The notes beneath the pieces were generated by a model. The model was not told the DNA's origin. It made no database searches and saw nothing but the letters and a program-made list of their open reading frames with translations. DNA of 64,000 nt from Anthoceros angustus. Lineage: Eukaryota > Plantae > Anthocerotophyta. A program made the translations under genes and the position numbers. Positions 49,695-60,168 of this stretch are shown here, one piece after another; position 1 is the first letter of the stretch; each line of letters opens with the position of its first letter. Location of the stretch: positions 656,964 through 720,963 of the forward strand of contig VJWM01000135.1 in the NCBI GenBank assembly GCA_010909165.1. The letters run 5' to 3'.

Positions 49695-51239
49695 ATGCCA
49701 CGTTTCTGGTGGCAACAAACCAATGATATTGATGAAGATGAGGACAATGAGGCTGATTTCCTAGCATCCCTAGCTCGGCAATTTTCTTCCTACACTCCCC
49801 CTGTCCTACCAGTGCCCGCTAGCATGGCTACCTCTGCAAGTGGTGCTCATGGTGGGGAGTTTAAGGAGAAAGACAGGTTTGATGGCAAGTCTACCATGTA
49901 CGAGAGTTGGAGAGCTCGAATGAAGGCATTCCTTGATGCCAGAGACGTCTAGGAATTTGTTGATGGCTCTATCTTAAAACTTGGACCAAGAGCTTTATTT
50001 GCCAAGTTTAACAAGGGCAATAAAGTTGCTTTTGCCATCTTATTGCCTGACTTGGATGAGGCCATTGTTTCGGAGGTTGAGTTTCTCCCAACAGCGGCGG
50101 ATGTCTGAACACAATTGAAGGATACATATCAAGTTCAGAATATTCTAACCTTGGTTGCTGTTAGAAACGAATACTATGGACCAAGGATGAAAGAAGGGGA
50201 CAACATCGATGCTCATATTAGCAAATTTTGTCGTCTGAAGGCTAGGCTTACCATGTTGAGCAACAAGTTGGAGGAAATTGACGTCGTTGCTCAGCTTCTT
50301 TCCAATCTTCCTTCCTCCTATCAGCAATTCGTTTGAAGTCAGAATTCTTCCTTGCATGCATCTGTTTGTGCAGTCTAGCCTAAGGCAGGAAGGACACCAA
50401 CTCTTACCCTAAATGAGCTCATAGGAACTCTTCTTCAAGATGAGCGGAGCTGAACTCGACCCGGTGGCACTGGGAGGGAGTGCATATAGAAGGTTCTAGT
50501 GGCATCAAAGGGAAAAGCGTTTGGATAGGGGAGAGAGAAGGGGAAGAAGAAGAAAACTCTATCTTCTACTGCTCCCACTGTCGCCAAACGCGAAGGTACC
50601 TGCAATTGGTGTCATACCCTTGGACACTGGGAGAGAGACTGTCGCAAAAAGATGGCTGGCGAACGAAGGAAGAATCCCAAACCTGCAGCGCACATTGCCT
50701 CTATTGGATCTTCCTCTTTACAACATGCTCACAAGAGTAGCTCCATTATTACAAGTGTGAGCCATCAGCAAGAGGTATGTTCACTGTTCTACTTCCCCTT
50801 CACGTCAACTCCATGAGAATCCCCCACATAGACCAACTGCTTCTCCTTCTGGTTGTGGAACTGGTGGATGTCCTGTTTGTTCCTGGAATGTCTAAGAACC
50901 TTCTCTCGATTAGAGCCCTTACACAATTAGTCTTGTTTGGATTCAGATTTGAGTCGGATAGCTTCTGCTTGTATAAGATCTCCAACAATGACCATGCATA
51001 GCAAGAGGAGGCTGGTCGTACCGATTCTGGTGTTCCACCGACCAGTTGTTCCCTCGGTAACATCATTAGCAGAACTTTGGCATGCACGCCTTGAGCATAT
51101 CAACAAGGCAAAGCTAAGTATGATATCTTCTATGGACTGCTATAAGGAGAGACTTCTAGCTCAATTCAAGGACCTTCCTGCTTGCAAATCATATATTTTG
51201 TCCAAACAGAAGGAGTTACCTTTCAAGAACAAAGATTAG
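49695..51239 (+). pseudogene. Copia gag and partial pol with stops and frameshifts; no integrase core, RT or RNase H
   Basis: DRFDGKSTMYESWRARMKAFLDARDV, RMKEGDNIDAHISKF, LLSNLPSSYQQFV, CCHC knuckle CNWCHTLGHWERDC, DVLFVPGMSKNLLSI, GAG-pre-integrase LWHARLEHIN...KQKELPF. Confidence 0.9.
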
Positions 51240-52147: not shown

Positions 52148-53619
52148 TAAAGGATCATGGCGGATTGCATACTTTGGTTATAACTTTTATTCTTGGATTA
52201 TCGTTCAAGATCTTAAACCCAAGAACTACTCCTTAGCAACCAAGGGATATATTATTGAGGATCTTTCTCTAGTTGTATCATTGGACGTATTAGAAGGAGA
52301 AGTTGTTCATTTTTAAAATTGCTCATGCTCTATGTGATGTGGCCATTTTTCGTGGAGATGAGTTTGTTGTTTTTATTCTTCATTCAAGTAATTTTTTAGA
52401 CGAAGTTGATTCAATCCCCTTCATTCTTCTCCTCTAACAAATAGAAATGGTTTTTGTTTGTAGCTTAGTGTCCTTATTCTCATATACATATGTTGTTTCA
52501 ATCTATGTCATTCAGATGTAACAGAAGAAAAATTCTATTAAAGTCTATACCATGGTGTGCTTAAGCTACTTGTACCAAGGGCATCCATTCCCTCTAGGCA
52601 TCCCATCTAAGTATCAATCTAAGCACATAATGCTTAATTTTTATGAATGTGCGTAGACTTAAATAAAATTCTTCTTCGTCTTCAATTGGATACTTTTTTA
52701 TAAAAACATCACTGTTACTAGGACGTACTTCTCCTCTGTGTTCACTTTTATGGTTGTGGCGATTCTGTCCAATTCGATCTACAGTAAAATAAAGGGCTTC
52801 CGGACATTGGCTTGGATCTCTCAAGTGGATCAGCCATTTGGTCTGACTTTTTCAGAGCATCTCCGTAATGGTGGAGGAACCTCAACTGCAAAAATTAAAC
52901 ATCATAGCCCAAGAAACCAACCGACAATTGCAAAGCATCAGTAAAACGAGCTTCCAAACAAATATATAGCCAATTCACGGATGAGGTGGTGTTCAAACCG
53001 GATGCGAGGCAAGAAGCGAACGTACATTTGAGCTGGCTGGCCGGACAAACTTGGAAAACCCTAATTAATATACGGATGCAAAGAGTGGCTGCCCGGAGGT
53101 GTGCTTGTTGCAATGGACCACATTCATGTGCATCAATAGGACAGGCATGGTGTAGAAAAGCTCATCTCAATTTAGCAAAGCTCTCACCTAAAGCTCCAAA
53201 GCTCTCACCATTACAGAATGCTCAAGCATCTTTTGGAACGACGGTAGCCCCTCCCCTTGCTGCTAGTATGGCCACCATCTCTGCCTCGTCCAATTGCGAT
53301 GTCACACGTCGCTTACGCTCTGCCTCCGCTTCAGCAACTTGCTCATCCTTCATCTTCTGCCTCGGTGCTTAATTAATTACTTCTCATTTGCAAGCTTCTT
53401 TTGCACTTTAGCGCCGAGTTTGCAATTCGCTCTGCCTGTTGAATTAGATCTAAAGCCTTCCATTTCTTTGTAGCTGCCTTGACAATTACAAGTTCCTTCG
53501 CCTTGAGAAATTTGGCTAGTCTTTGCTCTGTTGTTATCAAAGTAGCCATCGACAGTTTCAGCACACTTGGCTCTCAATGCATCTTTGCACTTGGTGGTAC
53601 ACCTTGCAATTAATTGATA

Positions 53620-53790
53620 CCGAACTAGTCATATTGCAAGCTCATACTCCTCCTCAGTTGTCAAGATTGTCCCGCCTTTCTTCGTTGATTTCACCTTTCC
53701 ACGCACCCATTCTTGCAACGTGCTTTTGGGGATCTTGAACTTTTCAGCCGAACGTGTTCCACCCACCTTTTTTCTTCATGTTGGTCCTTG
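53620..53790 (-). mobile_element. Degenerate pogo/Tigger-family transposase N-terminus (pipsqueak-type HTH leading into CENP-B-type HTH); the relic probably extends to about 52950
   Basis: Frame reads RSAEKFKIPKSTLQEWVRGKVKSTKKGGTILTTEEEYELAI*LVR. It matches the pattern AAxxFxIPxSTL...GxxTxLTxEEExxLxxW, with a TGA at the Trp position. Confidence 0.7.
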
Positions 53791-54502
53791 GTTTTTGCAA
53801 ACACACAGTACGAGTGTATATCAAAGGCCTGATACATGTTGTGCAAGCAGTAGCATTAATGTGTAGCTTTGCAGCCTTGTACAAAACATCGGATGCAAGT
53901 GCAGAAGAATGGATGAAGCAAGTGCAATGGAATGTAGGGAATAGCTCACTGTAGATCAATTAACAGCAAGCACGGCACAAACTATGATCAAACCTAGCGA
54001 ATGCAATTCCATTTCTAGCTTTCATAATCTCTGCTAACTGCATGCTTTATGGTTATGTAGGCCTTGGGGAACATTATGCAATTAGAAGAGTGAGGAGCTG
54101 CTGCTTGTGATCAATACGTAAATTTAGGCAGCCTTAATGCCTCTAAAGTGCTCAAATTTAGACTCTTATAGGCGGCAAAAGACACCATCGATCCACTCTG
54201 AGTACAAATGCTTAGTATAAGAGTTTGATGGAGTCCTTTTTTATCAGCTCTTACTGTTATGGTGTTTTTCTTCTTCCCTCTTACCTTTTTGAAAACCGTC
54301 TTGAGTCTACGCGGCTATAACCGGGCAAACGAATCAAATAAAAAAACCCATCCTCCCTGGCGTTTTCCTCCGAAACCCTTCGCTGGACTCTGTGATCGAG
54401 CCTTGTAATTTGAGTCGCTTGGGCAACGGATGCCGTGTACTGTCGTCGAGGAAATTCCTACAGCCTTGGCTGTGTGCTACCTGGGGGAGAGCTAGCTGGC
54501 CT

Positions 54503-56821
54503 ATGAAGAACAGTCTGATGAATTCCTCCAGCGGTGACAACACCAATTACTACGATGCGCTCGGGGTCAGCAAAAATGTTTCTCAAGAGGAGCTGAGGAA
54601 GGCTTTCCAAACGGAGGTTATTGAAAGCTACCCTGACAAGAGTGCGAACTCTCAGAAGGTGTGGCAAAGGAAGCTTTCCAGCTCCGTGTCTAGGTTTAGG
54701 TTTTATGTCCAATGTCATCGTTTCGTTTGTTGGCTTTCTTGTGTGGTGTAGTGGCATCGTAGCTCTTTTGATTGTGTCACCCATTTCCCTTGACTCATCT
54801 TGATGGCAGGCAGTTGCTGGTAACGCCCTCTCCTGGACAGTTTGCGAGATCTGGTATCTTTCACTCGTTTCATTGTTGGAAGGAACACGGTATTTCTCCC
54901 AAGCGTTGATGAAGGACTCTGCTGATTCTGGCTTGTTGGTTGGCGGATCGCTCCGTTGCAGGAGGTTTTCGCTACTTAGATGGATGGAGGGAATTCGCCT
55001 GGGGCGCGTTGGCCGGTGGGTTTGGGGAAACCATCATGCACCCAGTGGATACTCTCAAGACGCGAATTCAGAGCCAAAGCTTCGGGCTTCAGGTAGGAAA
55101 TGGCCGAAAGTCAGGTTACCAGTTGAAGATCCAATAGACTTGTAGGAAATAGTCTTGCAGGGGAATGCAGCATAGGTATAATTGGAGATTGACACAACCG
55201 GTTTATCAAGATTCAGTTTCAGCGGATGCTGTGCTCGTAGGCAGGTTGTTATAGTGATGCTGGTGCTGCATGTTGATGATCCTCTTGGTGAACAATCAGA
55301 GCCAGAAGCAAGTTGGGCAGCTACTAGGATCGGTCAGAACAGTTGATGGCGTAAGAGGTGACTCACCGACCTTACCTTGTATATGTTTCCTCAATCTGAG
55401 GATCAATTTGTCTGCCAGGCCTCTTCCTTCTTTTCCCTTCTTATTGGTTTCCCGGTTGTGTTGACAGGATTGTACAGGGGAGTGGTACCAGGAATCACTG
55501 GATCTCTGGTCACAGGAGCCACTTACTTTGGATTTATCGAGTCAACCAAAGACTGGTTGCGAGAAACAAATCCAAGCCTAGAAGGTCCATGGGCACACTT
55601 CTTAGCTGGTGCAATCGGTAAGGTGTCTGCAGCTCAGATTTACCCATTCGACTACTTTGACCTTCCTTGTTCTCACCGGGGTCTTGTTTTCTCATGTAAC
55701 CTTCATGTTTCAGGGGACACTATTGGATCCGTGATCTATGTTCCTTGTGAAGTGATAAAGCAGAGAATGCAAATTCAGGGGACCCCCAAAACCTGGCAAG
55801 CAGCAGCATTGAGGGAGGCCCCCCAAGCCGTTTACTATACGGGAATATTTCAAGCGGCAAACTCAATCGTGAAACAAGACGGACCCCGAGGTCTATACGC
55901 AGGGTATTTAGCTGCACTTCTCCTCTGGGGTATTATGTTCACCAGCTGTATGTTGGCCAAGAGTGCATCTTTGGTTGATGATGTGTGTGCTTGCTTGCAG
56001 CTATCTGTCAACTCTTGCAAGGGACGTACCATTTGCAGGATTGCAGGTAAGGATTGGGTGGTAGCTCAGGTTTACTTTGATAGCTTATTTGGTCTTCATG
56101 GTCTCCACATGTTATTAACAATGGTGGATGTGCAGATCATGTTCTATGAAGCTCTTAGGACTGGTGTTGAATATGGCCATCAGCAGTTGTCATCCTCCAC
56201 AGATGTGGCACACAAGTTTGGTACTCTTGAAGAGTTGGGCATGGGTGGTGCTGCCGGCGGTACGTGGTTGCCTGGTTTTCGTTATCGAAGCTTCCTTTGT
56301 TTGGTCCATTACCTAAGCCATTAAAAATTTTTGTGCTTTGGCTTGTCGTTGAATAGTTCCTGATGGTGTGGAGTTGGAGTATGTGGTAAACGCCGGGTTT
56401 CTTCTATCTGCAGTCGCTTCACGCTTGTCTTGTGACGCAGGTCTCAGTGCGTTTTTAACAACTCCCTTCGATGTCATCAAGACACGGCTTCAGGTGCAAG
56501 GCTTCAATGCAGTGTATGTCAAAAGCCACCCTGGCCAATTTCGCCCCTCTCCCCTGTGCTCGGTCGATGTAATAATTTCCATGTTTCTTCAGGTATGCCG
56601 GCTGGACAGATGCTTTGCGAACAATTTGGAGGGAGGAAGGCGTAAAGGGCTTTTTCAGAGGAGCTATTCCTAGGATTTGCTGGTTCGTTCCAGCGTCAGG
56701 CTTGACTTTTATGGCTGTGGAGTACCTACGAAAGCAGCTCAATCCGGAGCTGCGTGAACAATCATCTGGGGCATCCGTGATGACGGTGGTGGGCCCTCCT
56801 TTGGATGAGATCCGAACGTGA
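54503..56821 (+). CDS. Mitochondrial carrier family protein (At1g74240-like) with an apparent N-terminal degenerate DnaJ exon; predicted exons include 54503-54658, 54814-54853, 54962-55092 and about seven more ending at 56821
   Basis: Carrier repeats HPVDTLKTRIQ, VPCEVIKQRMQ, TPFDVIKTRLQ, plus GLYRGVVPG, ARDVPFAG and GFFRGAIPR. The carrier part is high confidence; the 5' fusion is inferred from splice sites and phase. Confidence 0.85.
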
Positions 56822-57054
56822 CACCTTCACCGCACCTATAGTTTGTTGCGCAAGTCCAGGGCCTGGCTGTTGTCTGACTACAGACTTTCCATATTTCCGA
56901 GCCATTTTATTGTTATCCCAACTTTTTACCAAGCTGGCCGAGATACCTTTAGGTGATCAGCCAGACTTTAAACTCATTTTTGAACCCTACCTACACACGT
57001 AGGGTTTATTTCCTATAGGGCCTGCTTCCGGGTTGAGGAGGTTCACGAAAGACG

Positions 57055-58466
57055 ATGGCCACCAGGGCGGTGCAGAGATATGGCCGCCAGGATGTGTCTG
57101 CCAGCGTGAGGCTGCTCACCCGCGGGCGCCCCTGGCACGGTTCGTGTTCCGGGATCCTTCTTGAGCGAAATGAAACGCAGAGCATCGGCGTCTCGGGACA
57201 AGGCGCAGTATTGCACGCTCAGGAATCTGCCTGGGATCGAGGTTTAGGGTTTATGTTTGATCAACGGAGGAGTCTGAAATTGTTTGCCAAGAGCGAGGCA
57301 GACCGGGAGAGGCGGCAGCAGGCCGACAGGATCGTGGTTTATAGAGGCAAATGGATGCGTCCGTTCCGATTGGTTGTAAGGTGTGCAACGGTGACCTAAT
57401 TCTGATCAAATGGCCGCCATTCCATGCCTGGCACGCCCTTGATGTGTGCGGTCTGGTGCAGACTGAAACTGGTTCAGCTGGCGGGCGTGGCAGCGTTGGT
57501 GATCCCCTTGGCACACTGGTCTCAACATGTAGGCTCCCGTTGCCATCGAATTCGTCACGGCTACAAGTTTGGAAGCAGCTGGATGTCTCGAAATTGCTAA
57601 GCTGCTCTGTTGTCGTGCAAGGCGCTAGGGTAGCCTTCCACTGCCGGCTCTGTTAGCTTGTGGAGGTGTTTTGATTGGATCCGCATCCGCGTCCGGTGCC
57701 CTTTGGTACTACTCTCGCAGGTGCACCGTCTGGCTGAAACTCTTTCTGTGCAATCTTGAATGTAGCCACCCCAGACTAGGCTGCGGGATAGGTAGGCTGG
57801 CTGAGGCTATCCCAACGAAGTAATCACCGAGCTCGCCGTGCGCAGGTATGTGGGAGAAATGGCGCTAACACCTGACATGAAGCGAGTGCAGATCAGCGTG
57901 ATGGACTTCTGGGGCAATCGCAAGGTAAACAAGACAGTCGCTCCTCCATTGGATCGATCCTTCGTACCATCAGCCTCCGACATTCTTGTTTCTGAGAACC
58001 GCATCCTTGTTTCAATTCTTTTGCAGAACGTGGACGTCGATGTGAGGTGACAGCAGACCCCGTCCGCCACTGTGGCTTCCGCTCCCGAATGCATCAAAAT
58101 GGCAGGTTAGCCTAACAGCAACAAAATTGTCCTGTCCAGGGATGTGATCCCGCCGCTCCAGGGCTTGGACAAGGAGGAGCTGCAGGCGGTAGCGAACCAT
58201 GTCCTCACCCCGCTGAACGGTAAGCCGATGCTCCCTCGCTCCTGACGTTTCTCCTTTTCCCGCCATCTGTCGCGCAGCATTATGACGAGGCATGGCATCC
58301 CCTGTGCTGTCACCTTCGCGTTCCCTTGGTGCCATCAGTGGCAGGCGAGCGTCAGTTCGTACTGAGCCTGAAGCACGGGCAACTGGTGCACAAGGAGAAG
58401 CTGTTCCAGCTCCTCCACGGCAAGCTGTCCGGCGACGAGCAGGAGAAGCTGGAGTCGTGTGGCTAG
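57055..58466 (+). CDS. TMEM186: TMEM186-like mitochondrial inner-membrane protein (TMEM70/TMEM186 family), about 7 exons
   Basis: Spliced product VYRGKWMRPFRLVV|RLKLVQLAG...WYYSR|RYVGEMAL...MDFWGNRK...DVIPP...FVLSLKHGQLVHKEKL. It parallels recalled animal TMEM186 motifs RLKLAQ, RRLVG, NFWGWR, DVIP and LRYGRILDRERF. Arg-rich presequence-like N-terminus. Confidence 0.8.
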
Positions 58467-59403: not shown

Positions 59404-60168
59404 GTGCGGTACCCGGCGGCCAAGCTCCGGCAGGTGGACAAGGGTGTGGCGCTGTGCTGCTACGCCACCAGCGAGGTCGCATCGTCCCCGGAGGCGGAGG
59501 CGGAGGCGGAGGGGGAGGGGGACAGGGACAGGGAGCAGGGATTGGGAGGGGCAGGGCCAGCGGCGTGGGAGGTGGCCGGGTCGTCTTCCCCCGGCGGCAT
59601 CAGCAAGCGCGCGAGGCCGACGGCTGCGGATTCCGAGACCCGGCACCCCGTGTACCGGGGGGTGCGCAGGCGTAGCTGGGGGAAATGGGTGTCGGAGATC
59701 CGGGAGCCCAAGAAGAAATCGCGAATCTGGTTGGGCTCCTTCTCCAGCCCGGAGATGGCCGCGCGGGCCTACGACGTGGCCGCGCTCAGCCTCAAGGGCT
59801 CCGAGGCCGTGCTCAATTTCCCGGAATGCCGCCCCTCGCTCCCCCGCCCGCCCTCCATGTCCCCCAAGTCCATCCAGGCCACGGCGTCCGAGTACGCCAT
59901 GAACGTGGGCTCTGCCTCCTCCAGCTCCCACCAGCTGCTGCTACCCCAGGAACAGCAAGAGCAAGAGCAAGAGCAGCAAGAGGAACAGCAGGATCCCGCC
60001 GCCGAGCCTGCCTATGTGGACGAAGACCTCATCTTCGATATGCACAACGTGCTTAAAGGCATGGCTCAGGCAATGCTGCTGGACCCCTGGGATCACCGCG
60101 CAGACCTCCAAGACGACGACGAGGATGACGACGACGACGCCGATGCTGGCCAAAGCCTGTGGGATTGA
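59404..60168 (+). CDS. AP2/ERF transcription factor, DREB (A-4/TINY-like) subgroup; 5' end unresolved
   Basis: [33 protein letters not shown]...[14 protein letters not shown]...LNFP (V14/E19 DREB residues), C-terminal [20 protein letters not shown] and SLWD. No in-frame ATG upstream of the domain. Confidence 0.85.

Follow-up and report, generated by a model that had tools for sequence, protein, structure and literature searches.

DnaJ-derived exons at the 5′ end of a mitochondrial carrier gene in Anthoceros angustus

Chimeric genes can be born by partial duplication or exon capture, a class that includes Drosophila jingwei and the gene fragments carried by transposons in plants. Here we describe a locus of this kind in a 64,000-nucleotide (nt) stretch of Anthoceros angustus DNA (contig VJWM01000135.1; hereafter the window, whose positions are used as coordinates throughout), where fragments of a type-A DnaJ gene head a mitochondrial carrier gene of the SLC25 family on the + strand. 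Sequence from two parent genes is found on one transcript, and the locus is almost certainly a DnaJ–carrier chimera at both the DNA and the RNA level. As in jingwei-type chimeras, a fragment of one gene provides 5′ exons and a probable start codon, and cryptic splice sites lie in former coding sequence. The locus differs from that class in that no transposon ends were found around the fragment, in the reduction of the donor by deletion to two small pieces, and in a reading frame that hangs on two AG dinucleotides. As a chimeric gene birth the case is ordinary, apart from its frame-switch twist. An earlier note on this DNA, made from the sequence, had proposed that a degenerate DnaJ first exon supplies the start codon of the carrier.

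The carrier portion resembles SLC25 proteins named 'substrate carrier family protein E' in its three Mito_carr repeats, its motifs, four of its exon sizes and the donor after helix 1. The orthologues of this group that we inspected start at a Met of their own, whereas the window gene has two DnaJ-derived exons in that place. The Marchantia copy of the carrier is named SLC25A26-like, and At1g74240 was equated with the group by the earlier note only. The 5′ portion resembles cytosolic type-A DnaJ (ATJ2/ATJ3, DNAJA1) in exon 1 (49% amino acid identity, and ~65% nucleotide identity to bryophyte-like copies), in a phase-0 intron and in the motif LTHLDGRQLL. Type-A DnaJ proteins have an HPD motif, a basic helix II and full domains, whereas the window relic reads YPD and QTEVIES and has lost most domains. 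Pam16/Tim16 are likewise J-like proteins without HPD, but they keep the full four-helix fold, whereas the window remnant covers only profile positions 1–36 of 63. Its splicing recalls NAGNAG-type tandem acceptors, and unproductive splicing coupled to nonsense-mediated decay, in that adjacent AGs compete and both are apparently used; here, however, the spacing is 4 nt and the choice switches the frame instead of changing one residue.

The transcript data are assembled contigs of four runs (X1, X2, X10 and X20), which include spliced carrier contigs from four related organisms. The X1 contig is 100% identical to the window, and X2, X10 and X20 come from relatives that differ from it by ~3–5% in nucleotides. 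Contigs of this type give neither transcript starts, abundance nor strand, and their assembly drops minor variants. The X1 contig, 1541 nt long, aligns from 54341 to 56999 with zero mismatches and nine GT..AG joints, which delimit exons 1–10; the ten exons joined at these sites come to exactly 1541 nt. The J-like exon is thus the first exon of the carrier transcript in this contig, with DnaJ-A-derived exons 1 and 2 joined to carrier exons 3–10. Contigs cross the exon 1–exon 2–exon 3 joints in four organisms, and the downstream joints are common to X2, X10 and X20.

Exon 1 (54341–54658) consists of a leader and the J-like open reading frame (ORF) and ends at a GT..AG joint at 54658; its left edge, ~160 nt upstream of the J-like ATG, is the start of the contig, not a mapped transcription start. 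The leader contains an upstream ORF of 21 codons plus TAG (54430–54495), identified in the ATG listing of the rebuilt mRNA, which has a weak AUG context and ends 7 nt ahead of ATG 54503. Intron 1 (54659–54809, 151 nt; contig joint 54656>54808 with the cut at +2, in X1 and X20) is followed by exon 2, 44 nt as observed (54810–54853; X1 and X20 joints), for which an alternative of 40 nt (54814–54853) is suggested by contig break points. Exon 3 (54962–55092) encodes carrier helix 1 and the motif HPVDTLKTRIQ, and its donor is placed as in the Marchantia and moss orthologues. Exon 4 (55300–55357, 58 nt) has the size seen in bryophyte orthologues and holds a TGA at 55344–55346. Exons 5–10 (55468–55617, 55714–55903, 56001–56046, 56136–56259, 56441–56513 and 56593–56821), with all joints GT..AG in X1, lead to the carrier stop TGA at 56819–56821 and a 3′ untranslated region (UTR) that reaches at least 56999. 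All of these features lie on the + strand. Intron 1 is partly retained in RNA of organisms B and C (X2 and X10). Intron 2 has zero contig depth, indicating that no transcripts start there.

The earlier note had joined 54658 to 54814 and 54853 to 54962. In the sequence, good splice signals accompany both 54814–54853 and 54962–55092. Both donors and the acceptor at 54962 are confirmed by the contigs, but the acceptor at 54814 is not the one that the assembled contigs use; they use 54810, and exon 2 is accordingly 44 nt and not 40 nt in both the identical X1 contig and X20. The in-frame link between J exon and carrier therefore lacks support in the form in which it was stated: the acceptor of the assembled transcript lies 4 nt upstream, and in that mRNA the DnaJ start does not feed the carrier frame.

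ATG 54503 opens a 52-codon ORF (54503–54658) that encodes helix I, helix II and the YPD loop, contains a second ATG at 54518, and ends CAGAAG|gtgtgg. This coding part is homologous to DnaJ-A exon 1. The 52-residue peptide scores 34.0 bits against the Pfam DnaJ profile (PF00226; curated cut-off 27.8 bits) and matches the J domain of human DNAJA1 (PDB match) with an E value of 2e-7. In tblastn against the window, a plant type-A DnaJ reference (P0223, a seed-plant gene that we also used for exon structure) aligns at this exon over 41 residues without gaps and with 49% identity. Judged by these comparisons, the J-domain resemblance is well beyond chance. In P0223 itself the first coding exon ends GAGAAG|gtgagg, in phase 0 and just past ...GGDPEK. 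Because GT follows the homologous Lys in the window, the J-like exon is no retrocopy; it was copied as DNA from exon 1 of a DnaJ-A gene, donor included. An exhaustive protein search also returned dozens of database fragments of 60–130 residues that run to ...GGDPEK and continue with V and unrelated residues; these fragments are best read as DnaJ exon 1 with intron read-through. Two parent-like DnaJ-A loci (L005 and L006) are 64–67% identical to exon 1, and their flanks are unrelated.

Little of a functional J domain remains in this exon. YPD stands at the position aligned with the His-Pro-Asp motif, and helix II, whose second half is basic in DnaJ-A (RKAAIKN), is acidified there to QTEVIES; with these two replacements the Hsp70-activating surface is lost. 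Helices III and IV are missing, with no continuation nearby, and full-length type-A DnaJ matches the window by tblastn only with residues 10–50 and 289–307. The same search found no G/F region, no CxxCxGxG zinc finger and almost none of the C-terminal-domain sequence in the window. The J remnant is therefore a relic, with neither a working J domain nor co-chaperone function. An exhaustive search of protein libraries with the 52-residue peptide returned no J–carrier fusion (best identity ≤53%), a blank that says little on sister species since these libraries are evidently without proteins of this genus. Several claims of the earlier note hold at this exon, namely the ORF with its phase-0 GT donor, the gap-free similarity to the type-A DnaJ N terminus, the change from HPD to YPD, and the position of the first intron directly after the Lys. 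Its statement that the rest of the J domain is absent is right for helices III and IV, but it missed a fragment of the DnaJ-A C-terminal domain at ~54781–54840.

This second DnaJ-A segment runs across the boundary between intron 1 and exon 2. Positions 54784–54840 translate as FPLTHLDGRQLLVTPSPGQ, and the aligned P0223 sequence, from the C-terminal domain, is FALTHLDGRQLLIKSNPGE; identity by tblastn is 68% over 19 residues (motif LTHLDGRQLL), and the Smith–Waterman score is 73, compared with 24.6 ± 3.6 for shuffled sequences. One X20 contig covers only 54783–54821 and its loose ends translate as SLTEALCGF and KSEPGEVIK, the sequence that flanks this segment in DnaJ-A; this contig is mRNA of a bona fide DnaJ-A. 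The tblastn match, the alignment score and this contig together indicate a DnaJ origin for exon 2 as well, and for the last part of intron 1, which makes the case for a chimera at the DNA level stronger than the earlier note held. The second piece follows the exon 1 piece in the correct order and frame. Its codons contain the acceptor region: GGC AGG CAG, formerly Gly-Arg-Gln, forms a tandem acceptor AG-GC-AG (54808–54813), with two AGs 4 nt apart (gcag|gcag). By the sequence, the joints and the frames, splicing after 54809 shifts the frame and splicing after 54813 keeps it. Further DnaJ pieces were sought in the leader, in intron 2 and over the initial 125 nt of intron 1, where scores did not exceed those of shuffles, and no convincing terminal inverted or direct repeats that would point to transposon capture were found around the DnaJ fragments.

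Downstream of these exons the gene is a complete SLC25 carrier. Mito_carr (PF00153) matches above cut-off in exon 3 (32 bits), exons 5–8 (60 bits, in two stretches) and exon 10 (43 bits), giving the three repeats that define the family, and the spliced translation contains the signature motifs HPVDTLKTRIQ, VPCEVIKQRMQ and TPFDVIKTRLQ in helices 1, 3 and 5. The top 120 protein matches all belong to the 'mitochondrial substrate carrier family protein E' group, from across land plants. In a word search with the stop-free carrier stretch, identity to liverwort, moss and lycophyte proteins was ~50–55%, with nothing above 55% and no J–carrier fusion among the matches. Read without its label, the sequence would point to a non-seed land plant, and bryophyte best matches at this level fit a hornwort. 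Internal exons of 58, 150, 46 and 73 nt have identical sizes in Marchantia, Ceratodon and Sphagnum, which also share the donor after helix 1.

The carrier body is free of stops, frameshifts and indels in four organisms that differ by 3–5%. Relative to the other organisms there are zero indels in ~1.2 kb of coding sequence and four indel events in ~0.45 kb of leader, intron 1 and 3′ UTR; among the differences listed, 5 of 9 in the carrier exons are synonymous. Mosses have almost the same helix 1 sequence, also in the stretch that precedes Met 55036. The intact motifs, the kept exon sizes, the indel pattern and this conservation indicate that the carrier is under constraint and that helix 1 must be translated.

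The gene nonetheless has no start codon of its own before helix 1, as the earlier note had recognized: reading back, TGA codons at 54769–54771 and 54910–54912 are reached before any ATG. Orthologues from liverworts, mosses, a lycophyte and angiosperms have their own Met 3–40 residues before a WREF motif. Their N termini are short and unrelated to DnaJ, and no J-like sequence occurs in those that we inspected; this is the comparison that the earlier note had called for. In Marchantia the ATG lies within the helix 1 exon, and in mosses coding begins in a small separate exon, with a phase-1 intron one codon ahead of the Trp. The window gene fits neither arrangement and has DnaJ pieces in place of the native start. 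TTG 54940 was considered as a possible mutated old start; translation continued across the exon 3 acceptor gives ADRSVAGGFRY..., which resembles Sphagnum ...SRSDGFF, but mosses have the phase-1 intron near here. A 315-residue ORF at 55377–56324 (+) was rejected as a gene, because it is the frame of carrier exons 5, 6 and 8 continued across three introns that contain no stop, and exon 7 lies in another frame.

The two acceptors have opposite consequences for the carrier. In the mRNA spliced at 54810 the ORF from ATG 54503 exits the carrier frame and ends after 125 codons at TGA 55344–55346 in exon 4. The first AUG in the carrier frame is 55036, within helix 1, and it is preceded by five AUGs that either lie in another frame or open an ORF that stops. 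Because contig assembly drops minor variants, 54810 is the commoner acceptor in X1 and X20. This mRNA is probably not productive, and nonsense-mediated decay is its likely fate. ATG 54555 was tried as a start in the carrier frame and is ruled out by TGA 54594, which RNA editing does not remove, because the X1 RNA contig is identical to the DNA. As a separate observation, the 54810 mRNA has 36 open codons in the carrier frame between 54597 and 54853; this stretch has no AUG and no acidic residue, is rich in Arg, Leu and Thr, and looks like a presequence. The look is probably a by-product of purine-rich J codons. Initiation in this frame would be predicted to yield the peptide QLLVTPSPGQFAR.

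Splicing at 54814 would supply the start codon ahead of helix 1 that the assembled 54810 transcript lacks, and a J-frame start through this acceptor is the sole AUG route to helix 1. The product would have 398 residues, comprising the 52-residue J remnant, a 14-residue remnant of the DnaJ C-terminal domain and the six-helix carrier; its predicted marker is the tryptic peptide LLVTPSPGQFAR, preceded by ...SANSQK. Indirect signs of this form come from contig break points. In X2 and X10 the exon 1 contigs stop exactly at 54658, the body contigs start at 54812, and intron-containing contigs of 208 and 207 nt cover 54630–54837. We simulated unitigs (k=31) for every combination of three forms (54810, 54814 and intron-retained). 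A mixture of 54810 with retained intron gives an exon 1 unitig one base longer and a body unitig from 54808, and a mixture of 54814 with retained intron gives an intron unitig of 213 nt; only the mixture of all three forms matches the X2 and X10 geometry exactly. The 54658>54814 junction thus has indirect but specific backing in two organisms.

These observations suggest how the gene may have formed. A partial type-A DnaJ duplicate with internal deletions would have come to sit before the helix 1 exon of an SLC25 carrier, and the native first coding exon of the carrier would have been replaced by the DnaJ fragments, that is, exon 1 with its donor and a C-terminal-domain piece of ~60 nt. The donor inherited from DnaJ (54658) is now spliced to a tandem acceptor that would have arisen within the Gly-Arg-Gln codons, and the two build the 5′ end of the carrier mRNA. 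With the distal AG (54814), both DnaJ remnants would be joined in their original frame and read on into the carrier, the N-terminal 66 residues being DnaJ relics; with the proximal AG (54810), which would account for the majority, 4 nt are added, a stop is met in exon 4 and the mRNA probably decays. The role of the J remnant would be confined to providing a start codon and an N-terminal extension, which the topology of carriers would place in the intermembrane space. The chimera event is older than the split of the four organisms. In at least three related organisms, A, B and C, the 4-nt tandem acceptor is preserved and free of indels. It is conceivable that it acts as a regulated frame switch that sets carrier output by dividing transcripts between a productive chimeric mRNA and a decay-prone one, with the J-remnant N terminus retained for an acquired role of its own, for example in precursor handling or targeting, but we consider this unlikely.

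On balance, we lean towards the view that the 54814 form exists and is the one translated, as a productive minor isoform. Several results weigh against this. The only exon 1–exon 2 joint seen directly is the out-of-frame 54658>54810 (in X1, at a depth of 34, and in X20), and if the 54814 form occurs in X1 it must be rare enough to vanish from the contigs. A hidden variant at 54810–54811 in organisms B and C could mimic the 54814 signal. Position 54503 is G in the three relatives (X2, X10 and X20; A>G), where ATG 54503 thus reads GTG; the conserved candidate start is therefore ATG 54518. The listed differences within the J exon are four non-synonymous, including the start codon, and two synonymous, one of the latter in the same codon as a non-synonymous change. 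This mostly non-synonymous pattern suggests that the J remnant is only weakly constrained. Much the same results can be read, more doubtfully, to mean that there is no fusion protein: the 54810 mRNA would be the relevant one, and the DnaJ relic a 5′ leader whose 125-codon ORF blocks the carrier frame. Carrier protein would then be scarce, lack helix 1 or be missing altogether, and the locus would be a recently disabled transcribed pseudogene or a strongly repressed gene, a corollary that we hold with the same reserve. The assembled out-of-frame joint, the position of the first carrier-frame AUG inside helix 1, the near-neutral look of the few J-exon differences listed, and the commoner cag|G context of the proximal acceptor all suit it. 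It sits poorly with a carrier body that is clean in four organisms 3–5% apart while leader, intron 1 and 3′ UTR carry indels, and with signature motifs that are all intact. Conservation with moss of the helix 1 sequence upstream of Met 55036 would be unexpected if that sequence were never translated, and the geometry of X2 and X10 calls for a third form, in which a base other than G follows exon 1 and the path meets the others again at 54812.

The carrier could also start elsewhere, from another first exon or promoter spliced onto exon 2 or 3, or at a codon other than AUG in exon 1, whose carrier frame is open from 54597; both routes seem quite unlikely, the candidates for the second being TTG 54621, CTG 54633 and GTG 54642. 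In X2, X10 and X20 the contigs cover exon 1 at roughly half the depth seen over the carrier body, which would suit a second start, but reduced depth near the 5′ end is usual, and among the pieces listed no contig or loose end points to another exon upstream of 54810, 54814 or 54962. The separate first coding exon of mosses, with its phase-1 intron near the same place, offers a precedent for the first route. The second gains from the 36 open codons without an acidic residue across exon 1 and the 44-nt exon 2, but the basic composition of this shifted frame follows from the purine-rich codons of the J domain, and five upstream AUGs would catch scanning ribosomes before they reached the non-AUG codons. 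That the whole arrangement is an artefact of mis-assembly or of chance J resemblance can be regarded as refuted: nothing speaks for it beyond the shortness of the J-like sequence (156 nt), and against it stand the contigs of four organisms across the joints, a Pfam score above cut-off, the DnaJ-A exon boundary and the second DnaJ-A piece.

If the preferred reading of a translated minor 54814 isoform is right, the locus is a clean and datable case of a gene surviving the loss of its start codon, by taking over a first exon and its donor from an unrelated gene and making a new acceptor out of former coding sequence. It also carries a warning for annotation, since a model based on sequence alone would pick the 40-nt exon that keeps the frame, whereas most of the RNA is spliced at the adjacent AG. 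It teaches nothing new about Hsp70 co-chaperones, because the J remnant is functionally dead.

The surroundings of the gene contain further transcribed and coding features. Upstream, a 1346-nt X2 contig (organism B) matches 53547–53748 and ~53918–53995, skipping 169 nt with non-canonical CG..AA ends in a region without X1 depth; the skip probably marks an interspecific indel or a further transcript that lies upstream of the carrier. A Copia long terminal repeat retrotransposon relic at 50115–51239 (+), the one that the earlier note had placed near the gene, matches Retrotran_gag_2 (43.7 bits), gag_pre-integrs (34.1 bits) and, weakly, Pol_BBD, with its pieces in different frames. Just 3′ of the carrier, a separate transcribed unit (57005–57500) is covered by contigs from X1, X2, X10 and X20 and has a GT..AG joint at 57380>57460 in X1; an ORF at 57055–57399 has no Pfam match. 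Farther downstream, 59404–60168 (+) is a single-exon ORF of 254 residues with one AP2 domain (55 bits), DREB/ERF-like and located in a very GC-rich low-complexity stretch.

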